From: Octopus sinensis
Taxonomy: Eukaryota
NCBI RefSeq assembly: GCF_006345805.1
Contig: NC_042998.1
Span: 156,488,001 to 156,552,000, forward strand
DNA length: 64,000 bases
Reading direction: 5' to 3'
The position numbers were made by a program, and so were the translations under genes. Of this stretch, positions 4,004 through 64,000 are shown piece by piece. The stretch's first letter is position 1, and each line of letters starts with the position of its first letter. A model generated the notes under the pieces. It ran no database searches, had not been told where the DNA came from, and was given only the letters and a program-made list of their open reading frames with translations.

Positions 4004-4004
4004 C

Positions 4005-4126: not shown

Positions 4127-4158
<32 letters not shown>

Positions 4159-4226: not shown

Positions 4227-4257
<31 letters not shown>
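4004..4257. repeat. Compound (TA)n/(TG)n microsatellite
   Basis: Direct reading. Confidence 0.95.

Positions 4258-10737: not shown

Positions 10738-11110
<373 letters not shown>

Positions 11111-21926: not shown

Positions 21927-21929
<3 letters not shown>
21355..21929 (-). mobile_element. RTE 3' UTR (related subfamily)
   Basis: (cat)n followed by the reverse complement of an RTE 3' UTR, ending cacttgtcctgccgggtct. Confidence 0.8.
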
Positions 21930-21971
<42 letters not shown>

Positions 21972-22136
21972 ATATATATATATATATAGATATATATATA
22001 TATATAATATATATATATATATAGATATATATATATATAATATATATATATATAGATATATATATATGTATATATATATGTATATATATATATATATATA
22101 TATAGTATATATATATATATAATATATATATATATG

Positions 22137-22199
<63 letters not shown>

Positions 22200-22227
22200 G
22201 TATATATATATGTATTATATATATATA

Positions 22228-22269
<42 letters not shown>

Positions 22270-22270
22270 G

Positions 22271-22301
<31 letters not shown>

Positions 22302-22352
22302 GTATATATATATTATATATATATGTATATATATATATTATATATATATATG

Positions 22353-22385
<33 letters not shown>

Positions 22386-22409
22386 ATATATATATATATA
22401 TATTATATG

Positions 22410-22450
<41 letters not shown>

Positions 22451-22465
22451 CTATATATGTATATA

Positions 22466-22506
<41 letters not shown>

Positions 22507-22642
22507 GTATATATATATATATATATATATGTGTTAATATATATGTTATATATATGTATATATATATGTATATATATTATATATGTATATATATATGTAT
22601 ATATATATGTATTATATATGTATTATATATATATATATATGT

Positions 22643-22679
<37 letters not shown>

Positions 22680-22708
22680 GTATATATATATATATATATA
22701 TAATATGT

Positions 22709-22745
<37 letters not shown>

Positions 22746-22822
22746 GTAATATATATATATATATATATATATATGTTATATATATATATATAATATATAT
22801 ATATATATGTATATATATATGT

Positions 22823-22853
<31 letters not shown>

Positions 22854-22875
22854 TATATATGTATATATATATATG

Positions 22876-22907
<32 letters not shown>

Positions 22908-23073
22908 TGTTATATATATATATATATGTATATATGTATATATATATGTATATATATATATATATATATATGTATATGTATATGTATATATATATATATT
23001 GTATATATGTATATGTATATATATGTATATATATATATATTATATATATATATATGTATATATATATGTATAT
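21929..23073. repeat. About 1.15-kb imperfect (TA)n microsatellite
   Basis: Direct reading. Confidence 0.97.
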
Positions 23074-28563: not shown

Positions 28564-28738
28564 CGGTTTTTTTGACTATTTATTAAATTTTATGTATTGA
28601 TTAAGTCTTTCCTTGTTTGTTTTGCAAAATAGTGGTTTTGTCTCAAATAATATTTTATAATATTTTACTATAAAATTGGATTTAATCCTAAATCTGATTT
28701 TTTTTTCCTGTAAATTGGATATATTCCCTAATATTTAT

Positions 28739-28841
28739 TATATGTATATATATATAGTATATATATATATGTATATATATATATGTATATATATTATGTA
28801 TATATATGTATATATATATATATGTATATATATATAATATG

Positions 28842-28874
<33 letters not shown>

Positions 28875-29035
28875 GTATATATTATATGTATATATATATA
28901 TATGTATTATATATATATATATATATATATAATGTATATATATATGTATGTATATATATATATATATGTATATATATATGTATGTATATATATATATATA
29001 TATTATATGTATAATATATGTATATATATAGTATG

Positions 29036-29066
<31 letters not shown>

Positions 29067-29159
29067 GTATTATATATATATATGTATATATATATGTATA
29101 TATATTATGTATGTATATATATATGTATATATATATATGTATATTATATATATATATGT

Positions 29160-29192
<33 letters not shown>

Positions 29193-29201
29193 GTATATAT
29201 G

Positions 29202-29246
<45 letters not shown>

Positions 29247-35491: not shown

Positions 35492-37271
35492 CTCTAAGGA
35501 ATAGAGTCTTAATCTCTTGAGTCTTTCCCAATAGCTTATAGAGGCTATCTTCTTCGTGTAGCTTTGTCGGATCGCCTCAAGTTCTGTGATTAATCTGACT
35601 CGTTGGTGACCATAGCTGAGAGGAATAGTCAAAGTGGCTTAGGACAAGTGTCCTCCAGAGGACCATCACGGTTTCCTGGTCTCTTGTTCTAAAGGCTCTA
35701 AGAATCCATCCGGTCAGCCGCCTACATTTCATTGCCAATTTAGCAACATGCACATGAAAGGTTGCATCATTACTCATGTAAATACCCAGGTCTCACACTG
35801 ATTGTGCCTCTGGGATTGCAATCCCTCCAGGTCCAGTGTATTTATTGGGTATTGCATTTAGTTTTGCATGCTGATAGCATAAAGCTTGAAACTTTTCAGC
35901 ATTGAACTGCATGCTATTCTTTTCAGCCCACTTGTATATTTTGTCCAGCTCACATTGCAGGTGCATAGTGTCTTCAGGGTTCTGTATTGCCTGTGAAACT
36001 TTTGTATCATCTGCATAACTTGTGATTGTGGCTCTCTGCATGGCTGAGGGCATGTCTGAGAGGGCCATTATGAACAGCAGTGATCCCAAAACAGTGCCTT
36101 GCAGAACAGCGCTCACTATTTGCATGTTATTGGAGGTGGCCCCCATTGACTACTACCACCTGACTTCTATCCTTCAGAAAGTCATGAAGCCATTTTCCCA
36201 ATTTTCCAACTATGCCAAGATCACGCAGTTTGTGACATATCGACTTTATCAAAGACCTTTGCAAAGTCTAGATATATCACTTCCACATTTGAGTGGTTGA
36301 GCAGTTGTTTCAGTACCCAGTTATAGTGTTGTAGGAGCTGAGTTAGGCAGCTTCTTCCTGGTCGGAAACCATGCTGGGTGTCAGGCAGCAAGTTATTTTC
36401 TTCAAGGAAGGCGATTAGTTTCCTTCTGACTATTCGTTCCATGACCTTGCTGATGTATGAGGTCAGAGAGATAGGTCTGTAGTTCTTGGCCTCTGCTCTA
36501 CTACCTCCTTTATGAATAGGGCATATTTTACCCTCCTTCGGTTTTCTTGGAAGTTTGCCAGTTGCAAGGAAGCTCTGAAAGAGGAACTGCAGTGGTCTTG
36601 CTAGGACTCGCTTACATACTTTTAGAAGGATTGCTGGGAATCCATCAGGGCCAGTGGCTGGGTTTGGGTTCATTTCATCTTTAGCCCTTATTACATCGTC
36701 TTCCTTTATATTGATGTAATCGATCATTGTTGCCTCTGATTTTATATCTGTAGTGGTAAAGTAGTCAGTTGGATTGCTGACTTGAAAATGCCCTAGGAGT
36801 GGAGTGAAAATACTTTTGAATTGCTCATTTAGTATTTCACTTATCCTCATTGGATTTCCTGTGAGTGTACCATCTCTTTCAAGGAGTGGCTCTATCCTGT
36901 AGTGCACCGTAGCTGTTTCTTTGGCATTGGGCCATCTGACATTGGGCAGATTGAAGTCTCCCATAAGAAGTACACTTATGTGTTGTTCAAATGTGACTAG
37001 AACTTGTATTTTTGTAAGGCAGTCTTGAAACTTGCCTACATGACTTGGAGCATCTGGAGGGCGATATGTAGCACATATAACTACACCAAGTTGCCTTATA
37101 TGTACGATTAGTGTGTCACACACCGAATTTGAGTATGGCAAAAGAACCTGGGGTGTGAGGTCCTTGCAGATGTACATAGCAACTCCACCATGACTCCTTT
37201 CTTTTCTATCGGCGGTCCGTAATACAACATACTGTGGTATGTGTATTTCCGCATCTGCTATATCTGGTTTC

Positions 37272-37274
<3 letters not shown>

Positions 37275-37330
<56 letters not shown>

Positions 37331-37466
37331 TACATATATATATATACATACATATATATATATACATACATATATATATATACATACATATATATACATA
37401 TACATATATACATATACATATATATACATATATATATATATACATATATATATATACATATAGATA
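37275..37466. repeat. (TA)n/(TACA)n microsatellite
   Basis: Direct reading. Confidence 0.9.
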
Positions 37467-39592: not shown

Positions 39593-39596
<4 letters not shown>

Positions 39597-39633
<37 letters not shown>

Positions 39634-39658
39634 ATATATATTTATATATGTATGTATG

Positions 39659-39689
<31 letters not shown>

Positions 39690-40464
39690 ATATATATTTA
39701 TATATGTATGTATGTATATATATATTTATATATGTATGTATGTATATATATATTTATATATGTATGTATGTTATATATATTTATATATATATATATGTAT
39801 GTATATATATATTTATATATGTATGTATGTATATATTTATATATGTATGTATGTATATATTTATATATGTATGTATGTATATATTTATATATGTATGTAT
39901 GTATATATATATTTATATATGTATGTATGTATATATTTATATATGTATGTATGTATATATTTATATATGTATGTATGTATATATTTATATATGTATGTAT
40001 GTATGTATATATTTATATATGTATGTATGTATATATATTTATATATGTATGTATGTATATATATATTTATATATGTATGTATGTATATATTTATATATGT
40101 ATGTATGTATATATTTATATATGTATGTATGTATATATTTATATATGTATGTATGTATATATATATTTATATATGTATGTATGTATATATTTATATATGT
40201 ATGTATGTATATATTTATATATGTATGTATGTATATATTTATATATGTATGTATGTATGTATATATTTATATATGTATGTATGTATATATTTATATATGT
40301 ATGTATGTATATATTTATATATGTATGTATATATATATATTTATATATGTATGTATATATTTATATATATGTATGTATGTATATATTTATATATGTATGT
40401 ATGTATATATTTATATGTATGTATATATTTATATATGTATGTATATATTATATATATTTATATA

Positions 40465-40519
<55 letters not shown>

Positions 40520-40544
40520 TATTATATGTGTGTGTGTGTGTATG

Positions 40545-40575
<31 letters not shown>

Positions 40576-40603
40576 GTACATATTATATGTGTGTGTGTGT
40601 ATG

Positions 40604-40645
<42 letters not shown>
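39597..40645. repeat. Regular compound satellite (TATG)n-(TA)n-TT, units about 18-22 bp
   Basis: Recurrent unit tatatgtatgtatgtatatatt. Confidence 0.95.
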
Positions 40646-45765: not shown

Positions 45766-48615
45766 TTAACATCCGTTTTCCATGCTAGCATGGATTGGAC
45801 GGTTCAACCGGGGATCTGGGAAGCCAGAAGGCTGCACCAGGCTCCAGTCTTATCTGGCAATGTTTCTACAGCTGGATGCCCTTCCTAACACCAACCACTC
45901 CATGAGTGTAGTGGGTGCTTTTTACGTGCCACCTGCACAGGTGCCATGTGAGGCTGGCGACAGCCACGGTTGGATTGGTGCATTTTACGTGCCACCGGCA
46001 CCGAAGCCAGTTGAGGCAGCACTGGCTTAGGCCACGATTTGGATGGTGCTTTTTACGTGCCACCGGCACGTAGGCCAGTCGAGGTGGCGCTGGCATCGGC
46101 CACGATTCGGATAGTGCTTTTTACGTACCACCAGTCCAGGGGTCCTGGCATCTGCCGGGTGCCAGTCATAGGATTGGTTCAATTTCGATTTCGATTTCAA
46201 TTTCAATTTCGCTTGCCCCAATAGGTCTTCACAAGCATGGGTGCCTGTCATCGAATGAGGTTCGATATCAACTTCGCTTGCCTCAACAGGTCTTTGTGTG
46301 TCCAAGGGAGGAAAGGCATGCATAAGTGGGCTGGACTCACTTGTCCTGCCTGGTCTTCTCATGTACAGCATATTTCCAAAGGTCTCGGTCGCTGGTCATT
46401 TCCTCAGTGAGGCCTAATGTTCGAAGGTCGTGCTTCACCACCTCGTCCCAGGTTTTCCTGGGTCTACCTCTTCCACAGGTTCCCTCAACTGCTAGGGATT
46501 GGCACTTTTTCACACACCTATCTTCATCCATTCTCGCCACATGACCATACCAGCGCAATCGTCTTTCTTGCACACCACAACTGATGCTTCTTAGGTCCAA
46601 CATTTCTCTCAAGGTACTAACGCTCTGTCGAGTATGCACACTGACATTACACATCCATCGGAGCATACTGGCTTCATTCCTCGCGAGCTTACGCATGTCC
46701 TCAGCAGTCATGGCCCATGTTTCACTGCCATGTAGCATGGCTGTTCGTACACATGCATCATACAGTCTGCCTTTTACTCTGAGCGAGAGGCCTTTAGTCA
46801 CCAGCAGAGGTAAGAGCTCCCTAAACTTTGCCCAGGCTATTCTTACTCTAGCAGTTACACCTTCAACGCACCCACCCCCACTACTGACTTGGTCACCTAG
46901 GTAACGGAAGCTATCAACTACTTCTAGTTTTTCCACCTGGAAAGTGACGGAAGTTGTTTTCTGCAGCTTTTCAGAGTTTAATGCTCCCGAGCATCTGCCA
47001 CATACAAAAACTATCTTCCCAGTTAGCCTTCCTTTGACATTGCTGCACCTCTTATGTGTCCATAGCTTACACTGGGTACATCTTATAGAGTTTCTACCTA
47101 CACCTTTTCTACAGATCGAGCAGGGCCATCTTCCTGAAGACATTTGTGGATTGTCTACCTTCCTACTTATTAGTACTTTGGTTTTAGCTAGGTTGACTCT
47201 AAAGCCCCTCGATTCTAAACCCTCCTTCCACACCTGGAACTTCTCCTCCAGTTCTGATAGTGACTCAGCAATTAGAGCAAGGTCATCAGCATAGAGGAGC
47301 TCCCAGGGGCAACCTGTCTTGAATTCCTCCGTAATTGCCTGGAGGACTATGATAAATAGGAGGGGGCTGAGTACTGAACCCTGGTGGACCCCAACCTCTA
47401 CTTTGAATTCTTCTGTGTACATGTTGCCAACCCTAACCTTACTTACGGCATCCCTGCACATGGCTTGCACAGCCCTCACCAGCCATTCATCTATCCCTAG
47501 TTTCCTCATTGACCACCAGATAAGGGATCGGGGGACCCTGTCAAAGGCTTTCTCCATGTCAACGAAAGCCAGGTACAGGGGCTTATCTTTGGTTAGGTAT
47601 TTCTCCTGCAGCTGTCTTACCAGGAATATAGCATCAGTGGTGCTTTTCCCTGGCATGAAACCAAACTGCATCTCGTCCAAGTTGACTCTCTCCCTAATCA
47701 GTTGGGCTATGACCCTCTCTGTAACCTTCATTACCTGATCCAACAGCTTGATACCTCTGTAATTATTTGTATCTAGGGCGTCTCCTTTACCTTTGTAGCA
47801 GTTGACTAGTATGCTGCTACACCAGTCATTGGGTATGACTCCTTCGTGTATCACCTGGTTAATTATATGGGCGACTAGGTTATAGCCGACACTGCCAGAT
47901 ATTTTGAGCATCTCTGCAGTAATTCCTGATGGGCCTGGGGCTTTCCCTGTCTTCATGCTTCTAATTGCCTTAACTACCAAAGAATTGTCAACTCGGATGG
48001 CTAGTCCCTCTGTTGGGTTGATATTCGGCAGACTCTCTTTATCCCATTCATTTTCTTTATTCTTTATTCATAGTGGCATCTCCAAACTTCTCTCTTTGCA
48101 TCCTCATTTAGTGCAAATGAACCATCATCCATGCAGACACATTTCTCTCCTACCACATCACGATTCTCTCTCACACACTGTCTTGCAACACGAAATACCT
48201 CAAGTCTTTCATCCTCACGGCGCAGAACATTGGCAAATTTTTTCTTATCAAATTTACATGCCCATAAAATGCCTCGTAGTTCTTATTCAGCTATGTTTAA
48301 ACTTGAAGTTATATCATATGCTGAAGAGCACGGTAATAGGACCACCGGAAGAAAATTTGATGTTGACGAAAGCAATGTCAGGTTATGGAGAAGAAATAAA
48401 GATGAAATTAAACAGATACCAAAGATAAAGAAGGCAATAATAAAGGACGTTACTGTATACATTTTTACAAACCAAGGACGTTATATAGACCTCCTTGACT
48501 CAAGTTAAAGAAGGGGTGCATATTATACACAAGGTTTAGGTTTTTCTGAGGTACAGCCCCCTAAAAATCCCCTGTGTATTATACTCAAGGGTGGACTATA
48601 CTCGAGGATTTACAG
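45130..48615 (+). mobile_element. pogo/Tigger-like deletion derivative containing a nested RTE
   Basis: TA|CTGTAAATCC...GGATTTACAG|TA; HTH remnant MPRSSYSAMFKLEVISYAEEHGNRTTGRKFDVDESNVRLWRR at about 48269-48440. Confidence 0.8.
45724..48249 (-). mobile_element. 5'-truncated RTE LINE with an uninterrupted 547-codon RT-C-terminus
   Basis: ORF 46337-47980 with RT motifs (QGSVLSP, YADD); 3' UTR and (ATG)n at 45724-46330. Confidence 0.95.
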
Positions 48616-48964: not shown

Positions 48965-50638
48965 ATATGCTGCAAACCCCTAATTTTTGTTCAGAAAAGT
49001 GGTTGTTGGGGTGGGGGGATGCATCCCGAATCATTGGAATTTTTTTTTTTTCTGTTGAATGAATTATGGTGATCTCCTAATATGCAACAACACCCATTTT
49101 TTGGGGGTCCGGGGAAACGGGGGAAGGACCCTCGGAAATTTCACCCCCGCCATTTTCAAATATTCTTTGCTGTGTTTTTTTATGCCCGTATTTTTAGATA
49201 ACATTTCGCAGAAATACGTTTGAGAGATTTGTCTTTCAAATTTATTCAGCAATCTGGAATTATTATATATCATCACGGATATAATTATCCTGTGATTTTA
49301 AGAGGTATGAAAAAGATATTTTGTTTTAACCCCTTAATGGATTATCCCGAATTTACTCGTGCATTGCAAATGTATCTTTTTAGACTCGGTCGAAATTAAC
49401 TTTTAATTTTAGCACTCAAACGAGTATATTTGTTTTGTGTCGTTTCATTTTTGAGCAATCACGAATTTACTCGCGTTGTCGTACGCCTGGCAGCACATAT
49501 TCTGGTGCCATTTCAAAGAGTTTATGCTTCTGAGTTTTGAACTTTTACTTCTGTGCATATTCAGCTTCAGGAGGAGGTTGATGTCATTTTAGAACTGTCT
49601 CGTTTTGATTCTCTATTATTTATACAAATAAGAGAATTATTTACGCATTTTTTTTTCTTAAAACTTATGAAGATTTAGATATATTCAGCGATCACGAAAG
49701 CGATTTTTCATTTCACGATCTGGAAAGCTCTGGAGACGAATTAGACACGTGTAGTTCAGACTCTGACAATTTTTCAGAAGATGACAAAGAAGATAATCAG
49801 ATAGATGCTCGTGTATGGCACGAAATCAATTGCTTGTCTGATTCGAAGAGAAAGCAGATACATGTGTGATGACTACAAGATAATTTTGTGTGTAACGCCT
49901 TGTTTAAAAAATTATCATTCTAAATAAACTATCTCATTTTTCAAAAAAATTTCCTTTGATTTAAAAGCAATACATCTTATAAAAAATCGAAGATAGTTAA
50001 GTTATATGTATTTTTTTAATGTCCGAGTTAACTCATTTAAATCCAATTGAGTAAAAGTACATTTTAATTTCTATAATAAAAAATAAAGGAAACAAGATAA
50101 AAAAACAACTTTTTTTAAATAACACAGTTTATATAATTAAAAAAGGAAATTAAAAAATATGCTCTGAAATGAAATGCCATGTCAAAATAATCGATCCATT
50201 AAGGGGATAATATACATTTACTTGTTCCACACACATACACTCGTGTTTTTTTAGATGAATTCTTTATCATTCTTTCTCTCTCCACAGACTTCGTTACCAC
50301 TAACTTCCATAACCTCTGTATTTTCACTTATTCTTTTTAGTATTCTTTTCAAACTTGCTTGAATTTTCAATTTAATGTGGATTACACACTCTCTCGAAAA
50401 GGTATTTCTGCAATATGTCGCCTAAAATTGTGAGTAAAGAAAGAAACATAAAAAAATATCTGAAAATAGGGTTGGGGTTCTAGGGTTCCCAACACCTCCC
50501 CCTCCCCGTTTTCCGGACCCAAAAAAGGGGTAATTCATTCAACGAAAAAAAAAAATTCCATTGATTCCGGAATTGGGGTGGGCGGTTTCCCACCCCACTT
50601 TTTTTCCGAACAAAAAAAAAGCGGGGGTTGCAGCATAT
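48965..50638. mobile_element. Foldback/MITE-like element with about 300-bp degenerate inverted arms
   Basis: atatgctgcaa...ttgcagcatat termini; further arm matches such as gggtccggggaaacgggg/ccccgttttccggaccc, and gtatttctgc in the right arm vs gcagaaatac in the left. Confidence 0.7.
49330..50206 (+). mobile_element. Internally deleted piggyBac
   Basis: 13-bp perfect TIR CCCCTTAATGGAT; TTAA/ATAA flanks; acidic N-terminal remnant and C-terminal Cys-rich RRESRYMCDDYKIILCVTPCLKNYH. Confidence 0.82.
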
Positions 50639-51709
50639 GGTACTTAATTCCACGCAAAAAATCCGAGATTTTTTTTTTTTTTACTGAAAAATCGTGTGGT
50701 TGAAAGTATCGAAATTTACCGATTTAAATTCGTCCCAAAAATGCAGCGAAGACATTTCTACTTATCATGACCTGCGAGCTGGGGGCTCTTGTTTATTTAG
50801 ACTAAAGTCGTTGGTTAGTTGAGTTGATGGTTAGATAACGAGTAAGTTTACGCACACATGCATACATGAACGTACACACGTATGAGTGCGTGTGTACACG
50901 TATGTATGCAGGTGTGTTAGAAAGAACAGACTGTAATCCCACGACTAATTCAGTGTTTAAACATGAAAATATATTCGCTGTCTTCCAGTAATGTAGCTAG
51001 AGTGTGTGTCGCCCGAGGTAACCCCGGAGTTTGCAACTCCACACCACTCAGAAGTGTTGTTCCTGTAAAAGCGCAAACAGGGACGGACTACCCATCTCTC
51101 TTCCACTTTATTTATAAAGTGGACCCTATCGTCGCTAAATTTACACCGAGCATTAAACTATTCAGGTTACACGAATATCTGATTTGTCGAAAGGGTTGTT
51201 TTTCCAAATCCTTTTTTATTTCCCACACTCAATAGGGTTATACACTCACGCATGGGGTTATACACCACTCATGCGTGCGCGCGCGTAAGTGCGTGTTATA
51301 CTCACACACGCACGCGCGCACACACAGAGAGAAGAAGAGTGTTGGTTATAGATAGGCAATGTTTTTGAAAATATCGTTTTAATCTTCTTTTTATTGTATG
51401 TCATATTTTTCCCTTTTTGAATCAAGGAAAGAAAATACTAGTGATGGTAACGTTAAAATATTCGTGATGAAGAATTTTGTAACTTTTAGTTTCACTCTTC
51501 CATCCTTCTTGTTGAAATGCCGCTGAGGTTAACTTTGCTTTTCATAATTCTAAGTTGATAAATTGACTATCAGTAATATCAATGTGTTACAATTGAAATA
51601 AATTGTCGGATATTAAAACTAAAAAGATAATTTTACAGTAGTTTATTTAACTTCTTTATTAATATTCTTTTGTAAATGATGAACATTTATATAAACCAAT
51701 CATTTAAGA

Positions 51710-54205
51710 TCAATAAAATTTTGTTTGAAGTAAGTCAGCACTCCATATGTGAGCTGCATATTCTTTGATAGCTCGATCACTTGAGAATTTTCCACAACAA
51801 GCTATGTTCAACAGGGATTTTCTTAGCCATTCTTTAGTATTATTATAAAGATTTTCTACATCATCTTGAGCTCTAATGTAATCTTCATAATCTTCAAGAA
51901 GCAAATAATGATCACAGTGGTACAAACTATCAAAGATTTCTATAAATAGAGAGGGATTGTCAGGACTGAAGTAGCCATCTTTAATCATGTCCATTGCCCT
52001 TCTTAACTCATCATTACGATGATAATGGCGTGATGCTGTATAGCCGGATGATCTCAAATTCTTAACCTCTTCAACGCAAAGACCGAAAATAAACATATTT
52101 GTTTTTCCAACTTCTTCAGCTATTTCTACATTGGCACCATCCATTGTACCTATTGTTAATGCTCCATTGGCCATAAATTTCATGTTTCCTGTACCAGAAG
52201 CTTCTGTTCCAGCTGTTGAAATCTGTTCACTAAGATCTGTTGCAGGTATAATTTTCTCAGCCAAGGACACACAATAATTTTCTAAATAAACTATTTTAAG
52301 TTTGTTTCCTATATCAACGTCATTGTTGATAATCTTTGCCATATTATTGATAAGCTTTATAATAAGTTTAGCCATCCTGTAGCCGGGAGCGGCTTTACCA
52401 CCAATTATGACGGTACGAGGAACAACAAATTTCTTTTCGTATTTGATACGACAGTATTTTGTAACTATATGAAGACAGTTCAGTAGCTGGCGTTTATATT
52501 CGTGTATACGTTTTACATGGACATCAAATAACGATGCTATGTTTATATTAATAAGGTATTTCTCTTTTATGTATTCTGCCATTCTTTTTTTGTGTTCCAT
52601 TTTGACTTCCATTAAATCCCTTAAAATATGGCCATCATGCTCAAATTTTCTAAGGTCTCTTAAATGGCATAACTCTGTTATCCACGCATCTCCAATTCTT
52701 CCCGAAATCAAATCTGAAAGACATGGATTACTCTGAAGTATCCACCGCCTTGGTGATATTCCATTGGTTACATTTTGAAATTTGTGTGGCATCATCTCGT
52801 AGAAGTCTTTAAATAGTTCTTGTTTTAGTAAATTTGAGTGTAATGCGGCTACGCCATTAACTGCATGCGAACCGACTATACACAAATAAGCCATATTTAC
52901 TTTTTTGTAAGGCTCTTCTTCAAATATGGACAATCTCTTTATTCGATCATCATCATTCGGCCAAATTCTTGCAACTTTTTCTAAATGTAAATGATTGATA
53001 TGGTAAATAAGCTGCAGATGTCTCGGAAGTAATGTTTCCAATAATGTAACTGGCCACCGTTCAAGAGCTTCTGGCATCAATGTGTGGTTTGTATAAGCAA
53101 AAACATTGCAACTAATATCCCATGCGTCATCCCAGTCCATGCATTCATCATCAACAAGTATTCTCATAAGTTCTGGTATTGCGAATCCAGGATGGGTATC
53201 ATTCAACTGTATTGCTACTTTTTCTGGTAGTTGATAAAACATGTCTCTTCCCCTTCTTTTCCTTCCATATTTATCAGCTTTGAATCTTCTTATAATATCT
53301 TGTAAAGTTGCTGCTACTAGAAAATACTCTTGTTTGAGACGCAATTCTTGTCCTTCGAAGAAAGTGTCATTTGGATAAAGAACACTAGAAATATTTTCAG
53401 CTAAGTTTCTTTCCATAACTGCTCTGATGTAATCTCCGTTATTGAAAAATTGCAGCTGAAATTCTTTGGTACATCTAGCTGACCACAATCGCAGAGTATT
53501 TACTCTGTTGTTCTTGTAGCCAGGAATTGGATAATCATAAGGTGTTGCAATAACATTGTGTGTGTCCAGCCACTGAAAGCGACCTTCTATAACTTCCACT
53601 CTTCCCCCAAAACGAACGGGAATTCGATGTTCGGGTCGGGATTTTTCCCATGGGTTCCCGTATTCTAACCATTCATCTGCCGATTCACATTGCCATCCAT
53701 TGTTAATTTTTTGTGTAAATATTCCATAATTATAACGAATTCCGTATCCATATCCTGTTACGCCAACTGTAGCCATAGAATCCATATAACAAGCGGCTAA
53801 TCGACCAAGACCACCATTTCCTAATCCTGCCTCCTCTTCAATTTCTATGAGATTGCTCAACTTCAGATTCATTTGTCTCAAAGCTTCTTCATTAGAATAC
53901 ATATTTCCAAGACATAACATGGCGTTCTCTAAAAATTTTCCCATATAAAATTCCATAGAAAGATAATAAACCCTTTTTGGATCAGTATCATAATTAAATT
54001 GCTGAGTTCTGATCCAACGTCCGACAAGTTGATCTTTAACAGAATGGGCTAATGCTACATAATAATCTCTTCTGGTGGCTACATTTCTATCTTTCATACA
54101 TGTGAAGTGAAGATGTCGATTGAAGGATTTTTTAATGTTTTCTGTACTCATCTCGTCTGCCAGTCCTGTCATTCCACACAGTGTAATTTGCTGTTGCAAA
54201 GGCAT
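51710..54205 (-). CDS. Intronless glycogen phosphorylase (831 aa), probable retrogene/paralog
   Basis: Single uninterrupted ORF with [47 protein letters not shown] and [10 protein letters not shown] (PLP lysine), GTMDGANVE. In-frame TAA 12 nt upstream of the ATG; AATAAA about 50-65 nt after the stop. Confidence 0.96.
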
Positions 54206-54719
54206 GTTTTTTTTTTATTATTTAAGTTTTCTATTATACTTTTGTTATTAGAGTTTCTTTTCCTTTCGATTTTGTTTAAACACTCGAAATATGTAGCACG
54301 GTAAAGTCAGGATGTTTCTTTTTTGATACTGTCAACATGGCTATAAATTACATTTTATTACGTCACTGCACGGGTTTGCATAACCATTTTATGACATAAT
54401 ATTAATGGTGGATATAGATTCTGCTTTCTACCTTTATTTATGTTCAGCTTTCGTTATAAAAAAAAATAATAATTAAACACTCCACCTCTTCGATTCCCAC
54501 TTTAAAGTGGGGAATATAAAATCCTAAGGTATATTGTGGGATAATATCACTTAATCATATAATTCATCTATACAATAATGATCCAGTTTTCTTTATTTTA
54601 GGGTTCAGTGAAAATTGTTTAGGTAATCAGGATTTTATATGTAATATGACTGTGAATTCAAATTTGCTACTGGCAAATTGTTTCTATTTCTATTTCAGTT
54701 TTATACTAGGTCAATTCAC

Positions 54720-55272
54720 TTCACTATTGGGGCTATCACGAGTAGTGCGGGCAAAATCTGCATTCTCAAAATTGTGTAACATTTTGAGAAATCGTATTCC
54801 GAGCATGAAAACCAAGATCTGTATATTGAACTGCTTTGTCTACCTTGTTTTTATGTACAGAAGTAAAGCTTGGTCTATAACATCAGAAATGAGAAGGTGC
54901 TTAGAGAGCTGTGAAATGTGGTTCTTAAGGGAAATATTGAGGATAGCATAGACAGATAAAGTGTCTAATGAAGAAGAGATGACCCGAGTTGCGGTAAATA
55001 GGAAACTGCTTCGTGAGATAAGGGCCAAACAACTGAGATTTCTTGGTCATGTGATGAGGAAAGAGGGCCTGAAGAATTATGGGATGACCGGAAAGATTGG
55101 TGGGAAAAGAAGTAAACGAAGGAGAAGGATGATATGGATGTCAAGCTTGACGAACTGGTTGCAAGAAAGAGGCATTAAACATCAGGAATTGGAACTGCTA
55201 CAGAAAATAAAGAGCAGAGAATTGTGGCAGAACATGATCGCCTATGTCCTACATTCTGGATATGACACATAA
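54720..55272 (+). mobile_element. Diverged RTE-like LINE 3' fragment
   Basis: AFSKLCNIL...TKICILNCFVY..MYRSKAW...CEMWFLREILRI; QLRFLGHVMRKEGL...GKIGGKRSKRRR. Confidence 0.75.
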
Positions 55273-55423
55273 AGAAGTTATTGGGGTTACGTACGCATTT
55301 ACCTGGGAATGCTGGCTGCAAAAAAATTGTATATAAATTCTAGATGGTAATTTATATTTCACATTTGTATCATGCCATGAAACCAGAGTGACATGCTATT
55401 GACATTTCTGCGGGTTTGAAGTC

Positions 55424-56035
55424 ACCCAAAGTTACAATACTTCTTTCCTTTTCATCTGCCACTTGTATTCTTAGCATCAATGCCTCTGAAGATGATACAG
55501 TTCGACAATCATCTTAATCTTCTCCTCAATTTATTATTTCTTTCGTAAATAGGTCTACGAATTCTGTTTTGTCAGCGTCAAAATACCCACTTCTTCGCAT
55601 CTTTTATGATGATCGAGTATCGTATAATAGCGGAAAAACGCATAAACGGTGTTCAGATTCAAAATTGACGAATTAGTGAAATGTGCTTTTGTCGACTCTT
55701 CGTTAACCACATCATCTTTATACCTTCAACATTGCAAAACATAATTGAATTTACAGAACTTTACCGGCAATAGTAAAAATTATTTTCATCCCAGTATAAT
55801 CCATCTTTGAATAGTGCTTTTTCGATATTCACTCTATCAACTAAAACAGATTTCACCCAGAGTTACAATACTTTTTTCCTTCTCATCTGCCACTTGTATT
55901 CTTAGCATCAATGTCTCCGGTGTTCAGATTCAAAATTGACGAATTAGTAAAATGTGCTTTTGTTGACTCTTCGTTAACCACATCATCTTTATACCTTCAA
56001 CATTGCAAAACATCATTAAATTTACGGAATTTTAA
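55424..56035. repeat. Imperfect tandem duplication (period about 430 bp), second copy internally deleted
   Basis: gttacaatac..catctgccacttgtattcttagcatcaatg at about 55431 and 55862; ggtgttcagattcaaaattgacg.. at about 55648 and 55919. Confidence 0.8.
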
Positions 56036-56059
56036 TCCGATGCAGTTGCTGAAATTATA

Positions 56060-56930
56060 GAGGGTGTTCGGGCTAAACATGACAGTTTGCTTAAAAGGTA
56101 AAGAAAACACAATATCCTATCCAAAAATAAAAGTATCTTAAAATATATATTTAAAAAATATCAACTAGATTAAAGTGGGAGATAACAGTTTACTCAAACT
56201 AACCTCCCTCAGCTTCCACTACAGTCTCATGATAACTCCGTTTCTCACTGCATCCTTGGGAAGATCTTCGAACACCTTGATCTTGCCCAGCTCGGCCTTG
56301 GTGTCGTAGGCAGAGCGGTTGGTGTCTTTCACACTTAGTAATCTTTAGAATTACAATCGGAGGAATAAGGAAGCTAGAAATGGGGACTGGTGAAATGGTA
56401 GAAACTCTCTGACAACCACTTATGATCTTTCAGGAGGTATGGCTGGAAACCGAATCCTACGGTTATATATATGACTTTCCAACAGCAACCCATCTCTAGT
56501 CAGAAATTGACCACTATCTTCAGCAGCTTCACATAGCCGTCTGAAAATAGCCTAAGGCTCTGTTCAAAGATGTGGGGATGAATTCTGATACGCGGCCACA
56601 GTTAGAACGCCTACTGTGTCCCAGTTGGCCACGAGTTCGCAGTCTCCGTTGCCTCTATCCATATCATATCTTATAGCTTTTACAGTGTACACAGAGCATT
56701 AAACAGCAGTCATAACATTGGCATTTTGACGCCCGGCGCGAATCATGATGTCACAGGTAACTCTTCCAATATTCAAATGGCTTCTAGTTCTCCATATCAG
56801 ATAACTTTTTGCCAACTCCAACTTGAATGTTCATGCTTTCCAATGCCGCTGACTGCTCACCAATACGTCAAAATGTTCTCGAAAAAAGGAGACATAAAAA
56901 AAAATCGTCAAATTTAGCTCGAACACCCTG
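56060..56930 (-). mobile_element. Tc1/mariner (maT-like) deletion derivative
   Basis: TIRs agggtgttcgggctaaa/tttagctcgaacaccctg with TA flanks; minus-strand remnant KWLSESFYHFTSPHF*LPYSSDCNSKDY...DTNRSAYDTKAEL. Confidence 0.78.
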
Positions 56931-58469
56931 TACAGGGCCAAACTGAGTAAGATAATACAAGTCACTCAACAAATATACATTAGAGTGTATTCATAAATAA
57001 GGGAAAACACTTGCCTGTTTGTCATGAACTTCCTTCAGGCAATATTTTCCTAAAACTTATCTTTCCCAGTATTTATCTTCGGCGTACATACTTGCCCTCT
57101 CAAAATTCTTTTTCCAACCATTCTATGTGATTTTATCATTAGCACTTCAAGAATAGGTATAGTGACAGACACGTTTAAATTGGGTTATTGAGAATTTGTG
57201 GCGTTCATACCTGTGCCGGATAGTGGTGTAGTGCTAAAAAAAAATTGCAGAAACGCAGCTTGAAAGTGTTTTTTCAGATGGAAATGAGGAGCAACGCAAG
57301 AGCAGCGAACCCATAAAGTTGTTATGGAAGGCAATGTAAGCTCAGGTAAATATTTTATTAAACTGATTTTAGTGGTAGATGGAAAGAGGTGAATCGAATC
57401 CCTTTGCTGCACTTTCAAACTTGCTGGGTTTGCAGCGAATCTGTACCACTGCGTAACATCCCATGTCTTACGGGATGATAGAGCGTTTATACCGTCGATT
57501 GAAAGCAGCTCTACGCGCTTATATCGAGTCAGACGCTTGGTTAGAAGTTTTACTAATTGTTTTATTGGAGCTTCGATCAGTTGTCAAGAAAGTATTAGGT
57601 TTTTCACCGGCGGAATTACTTTAAGGCACCCATCTTATTTTACCTGGACAGAGGTCACAAATACAACTGCACTTTATCGAAACTTCGATCCAGCAGATTA
57701 TGTTTATCGTTTGCAAAAATACATAATGGAATTACCCCGTTTGGTAACCAAGTCACAATCAAATCTTTTGTTCCACCGGATATTCATAAATACACTCAGT
57801 GTAAACAGTTTGAAACTTCGTATACTGGTGGAATTTCTCACCCAGAACACAGTTTACTTTGAACATTTTTGACAAAATTTCGTATTTTAGAAGTTATTTC
57901 GTGTTAAAGTTGTCGTAGAACAACTTCCGGATCATCTCTACTCAATGTCACCACTCTGTTCTATTCGTATGTCGAACGAAGACGATGCCATCTTTATCCT
58001 TTCTTCCTTTCTAGTCAGTACCATACATTCCTTACTTTTTCCCTCCATACTGGCGTGCTTTTCTTTGCTTGTAAGAGTTATTGTGAATTTTGGCTACACT
58101 ATATTTCGTGTTTTCTTTCGCGAGAATCTCACAGGTTCCAGGGTGACATAACGAGACTAAATTCATAATTGCATGTTTTAGACTTGAGTAATCCAAAAAA
58201 GGCTCCACGCGTAATTCTCTAATGATTGGTCATGTGACGTTGAAATATTTGGTTAAGTCCCACATTTGGATTGGTCTTGTTTTACGCGGGATACGGAACT
58301 CGTATCCGAACGGGGGCGGGGGAGAGGACTCGGAAAATTCACACCTATTGCACTCTTTTCTTCTTTTTTTGTTTTCGCTCGGGTCAAACACTGGAGTTTG
58401 ACCGAATAATATGGCAGTCGAAACTCTCCACTTACAATAGGACAATATTCCACAATGCATTTGAAGTTC

Positions 58470-58995
58470 TTGTACTGATTCCAACATTTTGGATACTTGA
58501 CTGGTCTGTAGAGAAAATCCACTTCATGGACGTTAAAACCCTTAAGATTCTAGCATCAACTGGAAATCTCCACAGAAATAAGGATATCGACAGGCTCTAT
58601 CTAAGAGAAGATAAAAGAGGTGGAGGTTTGAAATCAGCGCAGACAGCCTTCGAATGTCGTTCAGGTAGCACTTGCTAAACAACAGCAGCAAAAGTAAATA
58701 CATTAACTTAGCGCTGAAAAGTAAAGAAAATAGTATCCCACGTGTTGGCAGCGGGCTTCTTAGGAAACACGTTTTTCCTGATGACCTCCCATACAACCCC
58801 CAAATTAGCCGGACTAGCATACCTCAAAGAAGACCTGGATATGAAACGCTCAGTATACCGAAATGACCATATTTCCCGAAGACTTGAAGAGGACAGAAAT
58901 ATTGACATGAAGCGCAGCCTTTCTTGGACTCGTGACCACTACATCAGATCACACTTCGAAGGTTATGCATTTGCAATTCGAGAACAGGAGATTAC
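58470..58995 (+). mobile_element. R4/Dong-like (REL clade) non-LTR fragment
   Basis: WSVEKIHFMDVKTLKIL...HRNKDIDRLYLREDKRGGGLKS and FEGYAFAIREQEITT resemble post-RT motifs of R4-type elements. Confidence 0.6.
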
Positions 58996-59002
58996 TACGA
59001 AA

Positions 59003-59378
59003 TCTTTATATATAAAAGTCAAGTTGTGTGTCTGTCTCCTACGATTTAGATTCCTAACTACTCCCACATTTTGCGGGGCAGTTTAACCAAAACCGGGTAT
59101 CTTATAGTCGTGATTCATATCGAGCCCTTCTGGGTATTAGCGCGCGTCTACGATGAGTCTACGATTTTTAAAAAGATTTACCATCATTTTTTTCCATTTT
59201 AATGCATTTTTTCGCTATTATATAAGGGCAGTAACTCTCTAAAAATGTCTACGATGAGTCAACGATTTAAAAAAAAAATTACCATATTTTTTTTTCCATT
59301 TTTAATGCATTTTTTGCTATTTTTTGGCTATAACTCTCTAAAAATGCTTATATAGTTATTTCCCTTACAAACCCGAGC
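59003..59378 (+). mobile_element. 3'-truncated non-autonomous Helitron-like element
   Basis: a|tctttatatataaaag start, internal gtctacgatgagtc duplication, and an end at cccgagcaac (half of the terminal hairpin). Confidence 0.65.
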
Positions 59379-60350
59379 AACATTGATTGTAACTAACAAT
59401 CAGTTATTCTCTGAGGTAATAAATGAAAAGGTTTATATTTCAAGGTTATACTTTTTAAATAATTGTACAGTTATATATTTTCTTTAGTTTTATGCATCTC
59501 ACTTTTAATTATATGTAATTTTATCTATACTTTTGTAAAAATTCTGATACCAGATTATGGTTTAAATGCAAGCGTTCCTTATTCTTCTCATTAAGATAGG
59601 AGAAAATAAAAACCAAATGCACCATGATTTAGCGAAAGTGAACACTAACTTATCGTTACATTTCTTTGCTCTTTGGGTGTTGCCAAATATCCTCATAAAA
59701 ATTGTTAAATGTTGTTTAGATGAGGTTCGATGGGGGTAGGTTTGCTGAAATAAATAAGTTCAGTTACTCTGAGAAGTGGCTTTTCAACTAGGTTTAGAGT
59801 TTGGTCAGCGAAAAGTGTCAGTACGGTGACGTTAGTGAAATTCGCGTACCGCGCTGATAAAAAGTGTTCTAACATATTTTGGGTAGTGCTTACCATAAAT
59901 ATAAGTTAAAAGGGATGATTTCAGTGGCGTAGCAAGAGAAGCCAATAGTCTCATCCTTCGTTGATAGGGAGTAAACCGTTACATTTCAAAAAGTGGGGTA
60001 GATCACAAGTGCAAAATATAAAAAAGAAAGAAAATGGCCCACACAAATTCTTCGGCTTCGTGCTTCATCCTACACCGTAACAGAAATACAGGGACCGTGA
60101 AGCAATAATTAACGCTAAGTAACTGCTGCTAATCCATATTTAAATTCGAATTCGTGCTCAAAAGGAAAGCATTGATGTGCTTCGAAAGGTTAACTTAGCT
60201 CAGATTAGGTTAAGTTATCCCAACTTAGTTTAGCTTAAATGGACGTTTTCTCATTATAATTATAAATCCAACAAGCGCGTTTTAAATTAAAACAGCCGAA
60301 TGCGACAAGAATGCTTAGTACAAGTTTTAAAACTACATTTTCTTTGTATT

Positions 60351-60557
60351 TGTTATGTGTAGTTTGTGTTCAAATGGGATAGACAACCAAATGAAAGCCA
60401 TTGTTATTGTTTACGTGTTTATTTACTATTCATGTTACACGGACTCGACATTCAGCGTAGTAATACATTATATAATTTACACACAGTTTGTACTATTCAC
60501 TAACAAAATAGTGCCAAGAGTGGGGATGCACGTATACACACATATGAATGTGTAACA
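60351..60557 (-). repeat. 3' LTR (207 bp)
   Basis: TGTTA...TAACA termini; adjacent to the PPT; matches 63893-64000. Confidence 0.92.
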
Positions 60558-60569
60558 TCCCTTCTTCTT
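60558..60569 (-). promoter_or_regulatory. Polypurine tract
   Basis: AAGAAGAAGGGA immediately before the 3' LTR on the minus strand. Confidence 0.85.
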
Positions 60570-60982
60570 GAAAAAAATAAAGGGGTCTTCTGGCAGTGAA
60601 GACAATTATGAGTAGTCTCCCTTACTCTATGGATTGTCAGCCTGAGGTGGCAATCCTACAGCAGAAATCGTGAGATTATTCTGCCTCTGCTTTGTAGTCT
60701 AGCTGAATTAGTTACTTATCTTCTCATTTTCTTTTTTTTTTTTCTTTAACGGTATCGAATCGGTGGCAGAATGTTCTTTCTCCATCTGGTGGATCTTGTG
60801 CTTCGCACCGGTGTCTTAGGTGTGTTGTTGGGCTGCTGATGGGTGGTTTGTGCCCGTTGGGGTGATGATTCTGTAGGTGTTGTCACTGATGCAGCAGGTG
60901 TTGTATACGTTGTCTTCGACAGCTTTGGTGTTGGGCGGATATGGGCCCTGTTGCGTCTCAGCTGCCTACCAGATTCCGTTTC

Positions 60983-61094
60983 TTTTTTTTTTTTTTCTAG
61001 TTTCAGCTCAGAGCTGCGGCCATGCTGATGCACCGCCGTTTAAAAAATTTGGAACGCTTCACGAATGTGCGTGTCATCCTTGCGCAGGTGCCAC

Positions 61095-61132
<38 letters not shown>

Positions 61133-61145
61133 ATTGCCGAAGCAA
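60983..61145 (-). pseudogene. U6 snRNA retrocopy fused to a CR1/SINE-type 3' tail + poly(A)
   Basis: Minus strand: ttgcttcggcaatacatatactaaaattggaacgatACAGAGAagattagcgtggcacctgcgcaaggatgacacgcacattcgtgaagcgttccaaatttttt + aaacggcggtgcatcagcatggccgcagctctgagctgaaactag + An. Confidence 0.95.
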
Positions 61146-62144
61146 TATTATATATGATCTTGGAGTTTCAGCTCTACTGACAACCTGTGCTGGGATCCAT
61201 GTTTTAGTTATGGGATCTTGAGTATGCACATGTTGTCCTCCAAGTATCTCAGGTAAATACTGTTCATGTTTGTTGTAATACCTCTGTGATTGTTCTTGAG
61301 TGGCTGCTAGCTTTGCCCTTGTCTCTTCCTGGTCAATTGGAGGTTGGATCTTAGTTGGCAGGGTAGTTTTGTACTTCCTGCCATTCAGCATTTCTGCTGG
61401 GGATTTCATATCAGCTCTCAGTGGTGTCGCTCGTTGGGACAGAAGTACCAGGTGTGGGTCTTCCTTAGTCTCTCAGCATTTGACTAGTGTTCTCTTCACT
61501 GTCTGCACCTGTCTTTCTATAAACCCATGACCTTTGGGGTAGTGTGGAGATGAGGTTGTGACATTGAACCCATACTCATCGGCTAGCTTTTTGAATTCTT
61601 GTGATGTGAACTGCGTTCCATTGTCACATATGATCTGCTCTGGTATTCCTTGCTCTGCTAGAAGTCCTCGAGCCACTGTAGTGATTGTTTTGGCTGTCAG
61701 GTCTTTCACTTTTCTCACAAATGGAAATTTGGAGTAGTAGCAGGCCATTATCAAATACCATTCTTGGCCCTCTGTGAACAGATCTACTCCAATAGTTTGC
61801 CATGGCCTTCTTGGGATGTCACTAGATATCATTTCCTCCTTTTGTTGTGAGTTTCTGTACTTTTGACAGATGTGGCATGTAGAAACTGTCTTTTCTATGT
61901 CTTTGTACATGCCTGCCCAATATACTGCTGACTTGGCTCGGAGCTTGCATTTCTCCATTCCTAGATGCCCTTGGTGGATCTTGTAAAGAATCTCCTTTTG
62001 CATTGACTTAGGTATAATGATTCGGGATCCATCCATCAGGATTCCATTCTCCACTGATATATCATCATGGATGGCTCAATATTCACGAATTAGGGGCTGC
62101 ACCTGATGTCTCTTTTCTGGCCACCCCTGAATCACCATCTGAGT

Positions 62145-62722
62145 AAGGAACTGAAGTTCTTCATCTTTGCTGGTCTCCTCTTTGATTTCTGCTAGCTTTG
62201 TGGTTGTCACATTTACAATGTGGTGGACCTTTTTGCTTAGTCCTTCCATCTCCTGTTTGTTTGTGATTGGTGGTCGGTCTTTGATAGGCATATCACTGTC
62301 AATCCTGCTTGGCGCTGCTTTCACTTCAGCATTGATTGATACAATATTTAACCTCATGCAGGTATCGAGTCCAAGAATTGCTGGCCCTTCTGTTCTTGTG
62401 ACATAAAAAGAACACTTAATTATTTTTTCCCTTTGTGTGTCCCTGTGATAGTTGTTTTACCCAGTTGTGGAATCCTGGTACCTCCGCAATTCTTGGACTC
62501 GATACCTGCAGGAGGTTAAATATTGTATCAATCAATGCTGAAGTGAAAGCATCGCCAAGCAGGATTGACAGTGATATGCCTATCAAAGACCGACCACCAA
62601 TCACAAACAAACAGGAGATGGAAGGACTAAGCAAAAAGGTCCACCACATTGTAAATGTGACAACCACAAAGCTAGCAGAAATCAAAGAGGAGACCAGCAA
62701 AGATGAAGAACTTCAGTTCCTT
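62145..62722. repeat. 237-bp inverted duplication (62145-62381 / 62486-62722)
   Basis: The arms differ at only two positions that I could see; 104-bp spacer. Confidence 0.93.
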
Positions 62723-63879
62723 CTTTGGCTTTATCCTCTTTTGTCATGTGATGTGGGAACATCTTTTTGTAGAGGTTGACAGGTAAGATATCACTCTGGG
62801 CTCCAGTGTCAATCTTTAGCCTTAAGTCTATGTTTATTCTTTTCCTTCCGGCCTTCTTTTGAATTCTTATTGTCGTGTATGCTTCATCTTTTTTCTTCCG
62901 GTCGTCCTTTCCCATCTCATGCACATTTATTGTGCCGACTGCCAAGAATTCCTCCTCTGAGGTGTTTTGTTCCTGTTGTTGTGCATGTATATCTCTTCTA
63001 TTTCTGCTCCTCTTTGAAAATTGGGGCTTGTTTTTCTGGAATTTTATTAGCCTACACATTTTTTCCCAGAGGTTAAGTTTTCTACATGCTTTGCAGTGTG
63101 TACCGAATGCAGGACATTTCTCTCGGTTATTGAATTCATGCTCCATACCATAGTACTGGCATGTTCTTTGTTTGCGGGTATCTTTCGTCCTATGCCTAGA
63201 TACAATATCTACACTGCTGCCTAGTGAGCTTGTTTGTAAGCTAAGTGAGGCCATTTGTTTAATAGTAGCTTCGAATGCTCTTGCAGTGTCTATTGCTTCT
63301 ATCAACTGGAGAGCGTCCTTACCTATGAGGGATTTCTGAACTTCCTTATGAGCACACCCCCATTCTTTCGTCCTTATCTTTGAATTTGCATTTTTCGGCA
63401 ACATTCTTTAGTCTGGACAGGAAATTGTCAATCGTTTCTTGTGGGTCTTGTTTCAGGCCCTGGAATTCGTATCTGTGAATTCTATGGTTCGATCTGGGCT
63501 CTAGGTGCCTTTCGAATTTCTCCAAAAGTGTTTCTGGGTTATTGCAGTCCGATTCTGACATATCCCAGCTATTGAATAGGTATATTCCTTTATTGCCTGA
63601 CCATAAGAGGATATAGCTTACCTTCTCATCATCAGTTGTGCCTTTCAGGAAACTTTTGAAAGCCAGTTGAGTTTTCTGTTTGAATTTTTTAAATGCTTCT
63701 ACGACAATAAACGGAATCCCAATTCATAATCGGATGTAGATTCATCTGTACGGCGACGGGGGTCGCCATCTTGGATCGTCGTGTATGTTGTCCGAAGAAG
63801 ATGCGATGTTTTGTTTGTTAATTTCTGGTTCGTTGTGTTTATGTTTCGTTGTAAAGGCACAGTTTCCGATTAATTATTT

Positions 63880-63892
63880 ACCGCTGCCACCA
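63880..63892 (-). promoter_or_regulatory. Primer-binding site, tRNA-Leu-like
   Basis: TGGTGGCAGCGGT directly after the 5' LTR end, complementary to the usual tRNA-Leu 3' end (ACCGCUGCCACCA). Confidence 0.8.
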
Positions 63893-64000
63893 TGTTGTGT
63901 GTAGTTTGTGTTCTAATGGGATAGACAACCAAATGAAAGCCATTGTTATTGTTTACGTGTTTATTGACTTTTCATGTTACACCGACTCGACCTTCAGCAT
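63893..64000 (-). repeat. 5' LTR (partial, window edge)
   Basis: 7 mismatches in 108 bp vs 60351-60458. Confidence 0.92.

Follow-up and report, generated by a model that had tools for sequence, protein, structure and literature searches.

The window analyzed in this study, a stretch of 64,000 nucleotides that maps to CM016860.1:156,488,001-156,552,000 of the Octopus sinensis assembly GCA_006345805.1, contains on its minus strand, at positions 51710..54205, a single-exon coding sequence (CDS) for a glycogen phosphorylase (PYG), designated here p1 (paralog 1); a second intronless PYG is designated p2 and a further group of intronless sequences X. The open reading frame (ORF) of p1 is uninterrupted over its 2496 bp and consists of 831 codons (831 aa) followed by TGA, as had been noted in an original prediction made from the sequence alone, from which the strand was absent. 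The Pfam profile PF00343 matches p1 with 1067 bits (cut-off 27), residues 109-822 being aligned with profile positions 1-712 of 713, and human brain PYGB (5IKO), as well as the liver and muscle forms of PYG, can be aligned with it from end to end at E=0; by these matches p1 is clearly a member of the alpha-glucan/glycogen phosphorylases of glycosyltransferase family 35 (GT35). It is already carried in RefSeq as a glycogen phosphorylase, so that the novelty of the present analysis is limited to its evolutionary context.

Functional residues are given in rabbit numbering, which was transferred to p1 through a frog muscle PYG of equal length. The catalytic residues and those binding pyridoxal phosphate (PLP) are intact in p1 (G134/G135, H341, H377, N484, K568, R569, H571, Y573, K574, E672, S674, G675, T676 and K680, the PLP lysine in EASGTGNMK) and are the same as those of the frog, abalone and human references. 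Also kept are the residues of the adenosine monophosphate (AMP) site (D42, N44, V45, W67, Q71, Q72, Y75, R309 and R310) and the purine site (F285/Y613), and both residues of the phosphate pocket, R43 and R69, are Arg in p1 of O. sinensis and O. bimaculoides. After mapping to rabbit numbers, the statements of the original prediction that the catalytic and PLP motifs are intact and that the phosphate and AMP contacts are kept were borne out.

The picture is different at the N-terminus, where codons 1-8 (54182..54205, minus strand) begin an 11-residue segment aligned to KRKQISVRG, Thr8 of p1 being the equivalent of Ser14. Two in-frame TAA stops, read directly from the sequence of the same strand, are located at 54217..54215 and 54220..54218, i.e., at -12 and -15 from the ATG, so that the p1 N-terminus cannot extend upstream; the stop at -12 had been reported before and the one at -15 is an addition. 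The tail reads QQQITLCG in p1, KRRITIRG in p2, QRRITIHG in X, LRKQITIRG in the canonical Octopus PYG and LKKQITIRG in P0157, a canonical protein of Sepia esculenta type (84.8% identical to the Octopus canonical protein and encoded by a ~3.2-kb mRNA-like contig present in 79 run blocks, one of whose runs, SRR19578102, appears as Sepia esculenta RNA-seq in five papers). Around Thr8, positions P-4 to P-2 and P+2 have lost all of their basic residues in p1, three residues are inserted just past the phosphosite in p1 only (there is no such insertion in p2), and the first 24 residues include no Lys or Arg and three acidic residues. This tail is the same in O. sinensis, O. vulgaris and O. bimaculoides, and in a third Octopus species, known from sequencing runs, it is the same over the first 12 residues.

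Ser is found at position 14 in 204 of the 205 other animal PYGs sampled (800-900 aa), and Thr14 is restricted to the intronless clade, the canonical Octopus PYG and P0157. Both the serine and the basic flanks (K/R at positions 9-11, R16) that mark a kinase-switched animal PYG are therefore missing from p1, although the exchange of Ser14 for Thr, which the original prediction had counted among the remodeled features of this gene, has to be withdrawn as such, the canonical PYGs of Octopus and Sepia esculenta having Thr as well. The predicted loss of the flanking basic residues holds, and it is confined to p1, basic residues being present at the site in p2, X and the canonical protein. The reported differences in the 280s loop were confirmed, though not as a peculiarity of this gene: R277S, N284T and K289Q are indeed present in p1, but changes at these gate positions occur throughout the clade (R277 to S/C, N284 to T/A/S and K289 to Q in p1, p2 and X), and at about 27 further near-invariant positions derived residues are common to p1, p2 and X. 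Among the regulatory changes of p1, as judged from the alignment, only the loss of basic residues around the Thr and the 3-residue insertion are peculiar to it.

Octopus has three PYG genes, one multi-exon canonical gene and the two intronless genes p1 and p2. The canonical gene, anticipated by the original prediction as a multi-exon PYG elsewhere in the genome, is XP_029634504.1 ('glycogen phosphorylase, muscle form'), which encodes 850 aa in at least 14 coding blocks over 42 kb on CM016862.1, its product being 78% identical to abalone PYG and 60% to p1. Between the canonical proteins of O. sinensis/O. vulgaris (P0161) and O. bimaculoides (P0224) 47 differences were counted (94.5% identity), against 15 for p1 and 19 for p2, probably reflecting differences in alternative exons or gene models and not faster evolution; a comparison of canonical and p1 conservation based on this pair was dropped, the 47 differences probably being a gene-model artefact.

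The second intronless gene, p2, is represented by XP_036356237.1 in O. sinensis, CAI9717426.1 in O. vulgaris and XP_052834373.1 in O. bimaculoides; in all three genomes it is a single 2508-bp CDS encoding 835 aa, 70% identical to p1. In O. sinensis it is located on the plus strand at window-equivalent positions 69555-72062, with its ATG 5.5 kb beyond the window end. The two genes are arranged head to head, the distance from ATG to ATG ranging from 15.35 kb (O. sinensis) through 18.1 kb (O. vulgaris) to 23.9 kb (O. bimaculoides), and the proximal 9.8 kb of the 15.35-kb divergent spacer is found within the window at 54206..64000, the p2 locus overlapping the window at 59555-64000 with 100% identity. 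The N-terminus of p2, KRRITIRG, also matches the RRxT motif of basophilic (PKA-type) kinases, and the p2 of the third Octopus species has H571N and N678S.

Orthologs of p1 were found in O. bimaculoides (XP_052834372.1, 98.2% identical), in O. vulgaris (CAI9717427.1), where the full 831-codon ORF is a single nucleotide off the window (R730H) with the same upstream stops, and in the third Octopus species (runs SRR11869385/390/391/394; CDS at 279-2774 of one contig), where it is 89.9% identical. The gene model CAI9717427.1 ('isoform X3', 736 aa, starting at Met96, OX597815.1) is truncated and the genome has the full ORF. Group X comprises three uninterrupted PYG ORFs of 827-837 aa whose identity to p1 is 68%, and a metagenome-style contig of 190 kb carries one of the three; no other ORF of at least 150 aa was found in the 22.5 kb around the X1 gene.

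In bootstrapped neighbor-joining (NJ) trees a single clade of p1, p2 and X has 100% bootstrap support, and within it p1 pairs with p2 as its sister (78-81%). Compared with any other animal PYG, the canonical one of Octopus included, each of the three shows ~60-62% identity, whereas among the canonical PYGs of molluscs, arthropods and vertebrates identities of 73-80% are found. Of 382 alignment columns that are near-invariant, with a conservation of at least 97% across 209 canonical-type PYGs, 49-54 have departures in the intronless genes (p1 50), compared with 5-10 in canonical Octopus sequences, 6 in the Sepia type and 1 in abalone. Ten of the departures are private to p1, 10 to p2 and 11 to X, which means that p1 is not more divergent than its neighbor p2. 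The synonymous divergence (dS) between p1 and p2 is saturated, and no nucleotide similarity between them was found outside the CDS, the similarity ending at the CDS boundaries.

Its pattern of substitution indicates that p1 clearly evolves under purifying selection, in agreement with what had been proposed before. Between O. sinensis and O. bimaculoides there are 16.5 nonsynonymous and 32.5 synonymous differences, giving a ratio of their proportions (pN/pS) of 0.13, and neutrality is rejected with P = 1.4e-12; for p2 the corresponding pN/pS is 0.25. The p1 CDS is 98.0% identical between these two species and the flanking kilobases 93-95%. The terminal p1 branches of O. sinensis and O. bimaculoides have 3 and 7 amino-acid changes, respectively, none of them at near-invariant columns.

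Upstream of p1, on the same strand, an octamer resembling the cyclic AMP (cAMP) response element (CRE), TGACGTAA, is located at 54358..54365, 160 nt upstream of the ATG. The equivalent octamer upstream of every p2 and X copy is TGACGTCA, a perfect palindrome. Exactly one CRE-type octamer is present in each of the 10 intronless-gene 5' flanks (p1 of three species, p2 of four and three X sequences), at -152 to -160 for p1 TGACGTAA, at -253 to -257 for p2 TGACGTCA (near 9744-9751 of the extracted loci, where the O. sinensis p2 CDS occupies 10001-12508) and at -155 to -166 for X TGACGTCA, against a background density of ~0.05 per kb, taken from 246 kb of sequence at these loci. The octamer is absent from the 500 nt upstream of the canonical CDS. 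It is not enriched across the window either (3 distinct sites in 64 kb), so that its significance lies only in its recurrent position upstream of every intronless copy; the sole other CRE octamers in the window are found in a 73-bp unit repeated 1.9x at 7795-7935, each copy of which has a perfect TGACGTCA. A further site, ATTATGTCATAAA at 54388..54400 (minus strand; ATTATG---TCATAAA in the alignment), aligns with ATTATGACGTCATAAA of p2 and may be the ancestral CRE minus 3 nt.

A TATA-like box is found 33-60 nt upstream of the ATG in each of the groups p1, p2 and X; in p1 it is the hexamer TATAAT at 54233..54238 (minus strand), 33 nt upstream of the ATG, a putative core promoter that would imply a very short 5' untranslated region. 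Past the stop codon there are two AATAAA poly(A) signals at 51642..51660 (minus strand), 50 and 63 nt away, the first of which is also present in the third Octopus species. Taken as motifs, these elements suggest a compact single-exon transcription unit of ~2.6 kb with a predicted cAMP-responsive promoter, the predicted transcription start being near 54210 and the predicted poly(A) site near 51620-51640. Further along the 3' flank, a segment of ~1.09 kb (50471-51557) is present in O. sinensis and O. bimaculoides and has a counterpart of ~80 nt in the third Octopus species; this length difference is due to an indel, possibly the insertion of sequence that includes a (GT/GC)-rich tract.

As regards expression, full-length p1 and p2 were found in public-run assemblies only as contigs of the third species (p1 in four runs; cluster of proteins at 90% identity). 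Four Logan contigs of ~3.59 kb were considered as transcripts and rejected: their colinearity with the genome begins at -230, a point upstream of both the TATA-like box and the CRE, and continues well beyond the poly(A) signals, they have microsatellite ends, and they are most likely genomic. The canonical PYG, by contrast, was assembled as mRNA from Octopus and Sepia RNA-seq (the Sepia type in 79 run blocks), and the ease of this assembly hints weakly at low or narrow expression of the intronless genes.

The three-gene layout, the membership of p1 in the intronless clade and the presence in that clade of a coleoid Thr14 are largely established by these data. Since Thr14 is found in the canonical PYGs of Octopus and of the Sepia type as well as in the intronless clade, it can be regarded as a coleoid trait inherited by the clade. 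For the contrast in introns, the adjacency of p1 and p2, the tree and the distribution of Thr14 that were observed, the most economical history would be a retroposition followed by an inverted duplication: a coleoid PYG mRNA would have been retroposed once, long ago, to give an intronless copy, which would have gained a compact promoter with a CRE and a TATA-like box, and a local inverted duplication in the octopod lineage would then have produced p1 and p2, making p1 the product of a duplication at the DNA level. With regard to function, the intact catalytic machinery, PLP site, AMP site and R43/R69 predict an active, AMP-responsive phosphorylase, and the clade-wide change in the 280s gate (N284, R277 and K289) would weaken the glucose/T-state lock. 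The change from KRRITIRG to QQQITLCG together with the 3-residue insertion, i.e., the loss of the basic tail residues in p1, would remove the local determinants recognized by phosphorylase kinase, and control of p1 would most likely be exerted by allosteric effectors and transcription and not by the kinase cascade. Taking these parts together, we consider it likely, with a probability of roughly 0.7, that p1 is a functional single-exon GT35 PYG which arose as a local duplicate of an old coleoid retrogene and has lost the local phosphorylase-kinase determinants.

A number of observations weigh against this reading. With regard to origin, retroposition is deduced solely from the absence of introns: no A-run of at least 8 nt is present within 1 kb of the p1 stop, and no word of at least 10 nt is shared between the 600-nt flanks of p1 as a target-site duplication, although the erasure of such marks is to be expected at this age. 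NJ joins the long-branched intronless clade to vertebrates at 59%, away from canonical Octopus PYG, a placement which we treat as long-branch attraction, and NJ was accordingly discarded as a means of attaching the clade to its parent. The count of exclusively shared rare residues was likewise rejected as a test of parentage, canonical Octopus PYG giving 3-5 and an unrelated flatworm 6, which does not discriminate, and the proposed coleoid origin of the clade thus relies mainly on Thr14 and parsimony. With regard to function, 25 of the 38 changes on the p1 branch of the third Octopus species fall at near-invariant columns, with the ORF intact; they include L136I, L139V, D339E, N376C, H377Q and Y573H, at catalytic residues that do not otherwise vary; the ortholog also has R69K, and the pairwise pN/pS against O. 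sinensis is 0.28, so that catalytic constraint appears, from these substitutions, to be relaxed or altered in that species and is not universal. No p1 transcripts turned up among the public-run assemblies, which is no evidence either way on expression. In p1 Thr8, R43 and R69 are retained, which would be unexpected if phosphorylation no longer mattered. The Km of phosphorylase kinase for whole phosphorylase is ~1000-fold lower than for a phosphosite peptide, pointing to remote docking (PMC2639635), and because of such docking the loss of a local motif need not abolish phosphorylation.

The original prediction had described p1 as a retroposed paralog. That p1 is intronless, with a multi-exon PYG on another chromosome, agrees with this, and remnants of long interspersed nuclear element (LINE) reverse transcriptases are plentiful in the window; yet it is highly unlikely that p1 itself was copied directly from the multi-exon octopus gene. 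The closest relative of a primary retrocopy is its parent, whereas the sister of p1 is the adjacent intronless p2, 15.35 kb away (70% identity compared with 60% to the canonical protein), and p1 is therefore not the primary retrocopy. In three genomes the two genes face each other head to head across 15-24 kb, R277, N284, K289 and about 27 near-invariant positions with derived residues are common to p2 and X, and neither a poly(A) tract nor a target-site duplication is present near p1. The clade could conversely be a very old PYG paralog, older than the cephalopods, that lost its introns secondarily, and its equidistance (60-62%) from all animal PYGs, those of its host included, and the failure of NJ to join it to the molluscs would be in keeping with this. 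Such a paralog would have to have been lost from all the other animals sampled, Thr14 is found elsewhere only in canonical PYGs of coleoids, and the elevated rate is accounted for by the 49-54 near-invariant departures, a case of long-branch behavior, which leaves great antiquity, too, with a very small probability compared with an old coleoid retrogene.

With regard to regulation, phosphorylation of Thr8 may still switch p1, either by phosphorylase kinase acting via remote docking or by another kinase, in which case the altered tail would retune covalent control. All three of O. sinensis, O. vulgaris and O. bimaculoides have kept Thr8, R43 and R69, QQQITLCG is invariant in three to four species, which implies constraint, and the kinase has a Km for intact phosphorylase ~1000-fold below that for the peptide (PMC2639635); set against the disappearance of the basic residues at P-4 to P-2 and P+2 and the insertion of three residues, this leaves a retained switch as possible though less than probable. 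Lowe et al. (1997) and peptide studies have reportedly found the Arg at P+2 and the Lys at P-3 to be important determinants, and Thr is said to be a poor acceptor, which also speaks against a retained switch. A more drastic suggestion is that p1 is silent or a relic of no catalytic relevance, on its way to becoming a pseudoenzyme, with an intact ORF that is misleading. Full-length p1 came from run assemblies only in four genomic-looking runs of one other species, while the canonical gene was assembled as mRNA (an Octopus run and 79 Sepia-type run blocks), and the third-species ortholog is without H377 and Y573. This is nevertheless improbable, given that pN/pS is 0.13 with neutrality rejected at 1e-12, that the ORF is intact in four species despite saturated dS from p2, that no conserved column has changed on the O. 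sinensis and O. bimaculoides branches, and that the CRE and TATA elements are conserved.

A functional p1 that has lost its local kinase determinants could be taken further, to the proposal that the retrogene-derived PYGs of coleoids have replaced control by cAMP, PKA and phosphorylase kinase altogether: p1, with its non-basic and net acidic tail, would be kinase-independent and either AMP-only or constitutive, the altered gate would relieve glucose inhibition, and the CRE and TATA elements would shift cAMP control to transcription. We regard this extension, drawn from sequence features, as doubtful. If it were true, p1 would provide the first demonstrated escape of an animal PYG isozyme from the classical Ser14 switch. 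The literature searched contained nothing relevant on a PYG retrogene, on this clade or on the regulation of cephalopod PYGs.

The remainder of the window contains decayed and repetitive sequence. The decayed transposable-element ORFs that the original prediction had placed around the gene were recognized: they are fragments located on the minus strand at 2727-3779, 12839-13600, 36221-37459 and 46337-47980 and on the plus strand at 3959-4972, 8349-9341 and 33172-34143, and they encode RVT_1 non-LTR (non-long-terminal-repeat) reverse transcriptase (an endonuclease domain accompanying it in one case and a PHD finger in another), DUF4371 and a zinc finger of Spin-doc type, all of them incomplete. 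A 560-aa ORF at 23298-24980 has no Pfam match. Microsatellites of (AT)n/(TA)n and ATAT-GTAT type, up to 1.1 kb long, are found at 4005-4257, 10829-11110, 21929-23073, 28731-29246 and 39593-40644, and these arrays account for the tract of 14-30% GC at 22-30 kb and for the overlapping pseudo-ORFs at 39.6-40.7 kb. Two copies of a 675-bp element, which is probably a young interspersed repeat, are 98% identical and are located at 34823-35497 (17 kb downstream of p1) and at window-equivalent ~65025-65697, in the spacer between p1 and p2.

Textbooks use glycogen phosphorylase to illustrate control by reversible phosphorylation, and coleoids depart from its near-invariant Ser14 motif in two ways, with Thr in the canonical enzyme and with a fast-evolving intronless clade, of which p1 is the member without kinase-recognition residues and yet under strong purifying selection. 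Should biochemistry agree, p1 would constitute a natural experiment in the rewiring of a classic regulatory switch, and the clade a retrogene family long retained in cephalopods. Even so, p1 is a modest evolutionary curiosity and not a new kind of system.

Among known systems, p2 is like p1 in being a single-exon gene on the same chromosome with Thr14, R277C/S, N284A/T, K289Q, L380M and an upstream CRE octamer, but differs in its strongly basic KRRITIRG, in having no 3-residue insertion and in the palindromic TGACGTCA at -253. The canonical Octopus PYG has the genome, the enzyme family and Thr14 in common with p1 and represents the presumed source lineage of the retrocopy; unlike p1, it has many exons, is located on another chromosome and keeps LRKQITIRG, R277, N284 and K289. 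Vertebrate PYGs (human PYGB 5IKO; rabbit muscle GPb/GPa) are ~62% identical to p1 over the full length, with the catalytic, PLP, AMP-site, purine-site (F285/Y613) and phosphoserine-pocket residues conserved, and differ from it in their Ser14 within KRKQISVRG, their intact N284/R277/K289 gate and their multi-exon genes. A further parallel is mammalian PGK2, the retrogene-derived intronless isozyme of a multi-exon metabolic gene of housekeeping type, which is under purifying selection and has a short promoter. By analogy p1 may be seen as resembling PGK2 in being an intronless copy of a metabolic gene under purifying selection with a short putative promoter, a likeness that we do not extend to germline expression; in contrast with PGK2, the retrocopy behind p1 would itself have been duplicated, and its divergence from the parent gene is much greater.

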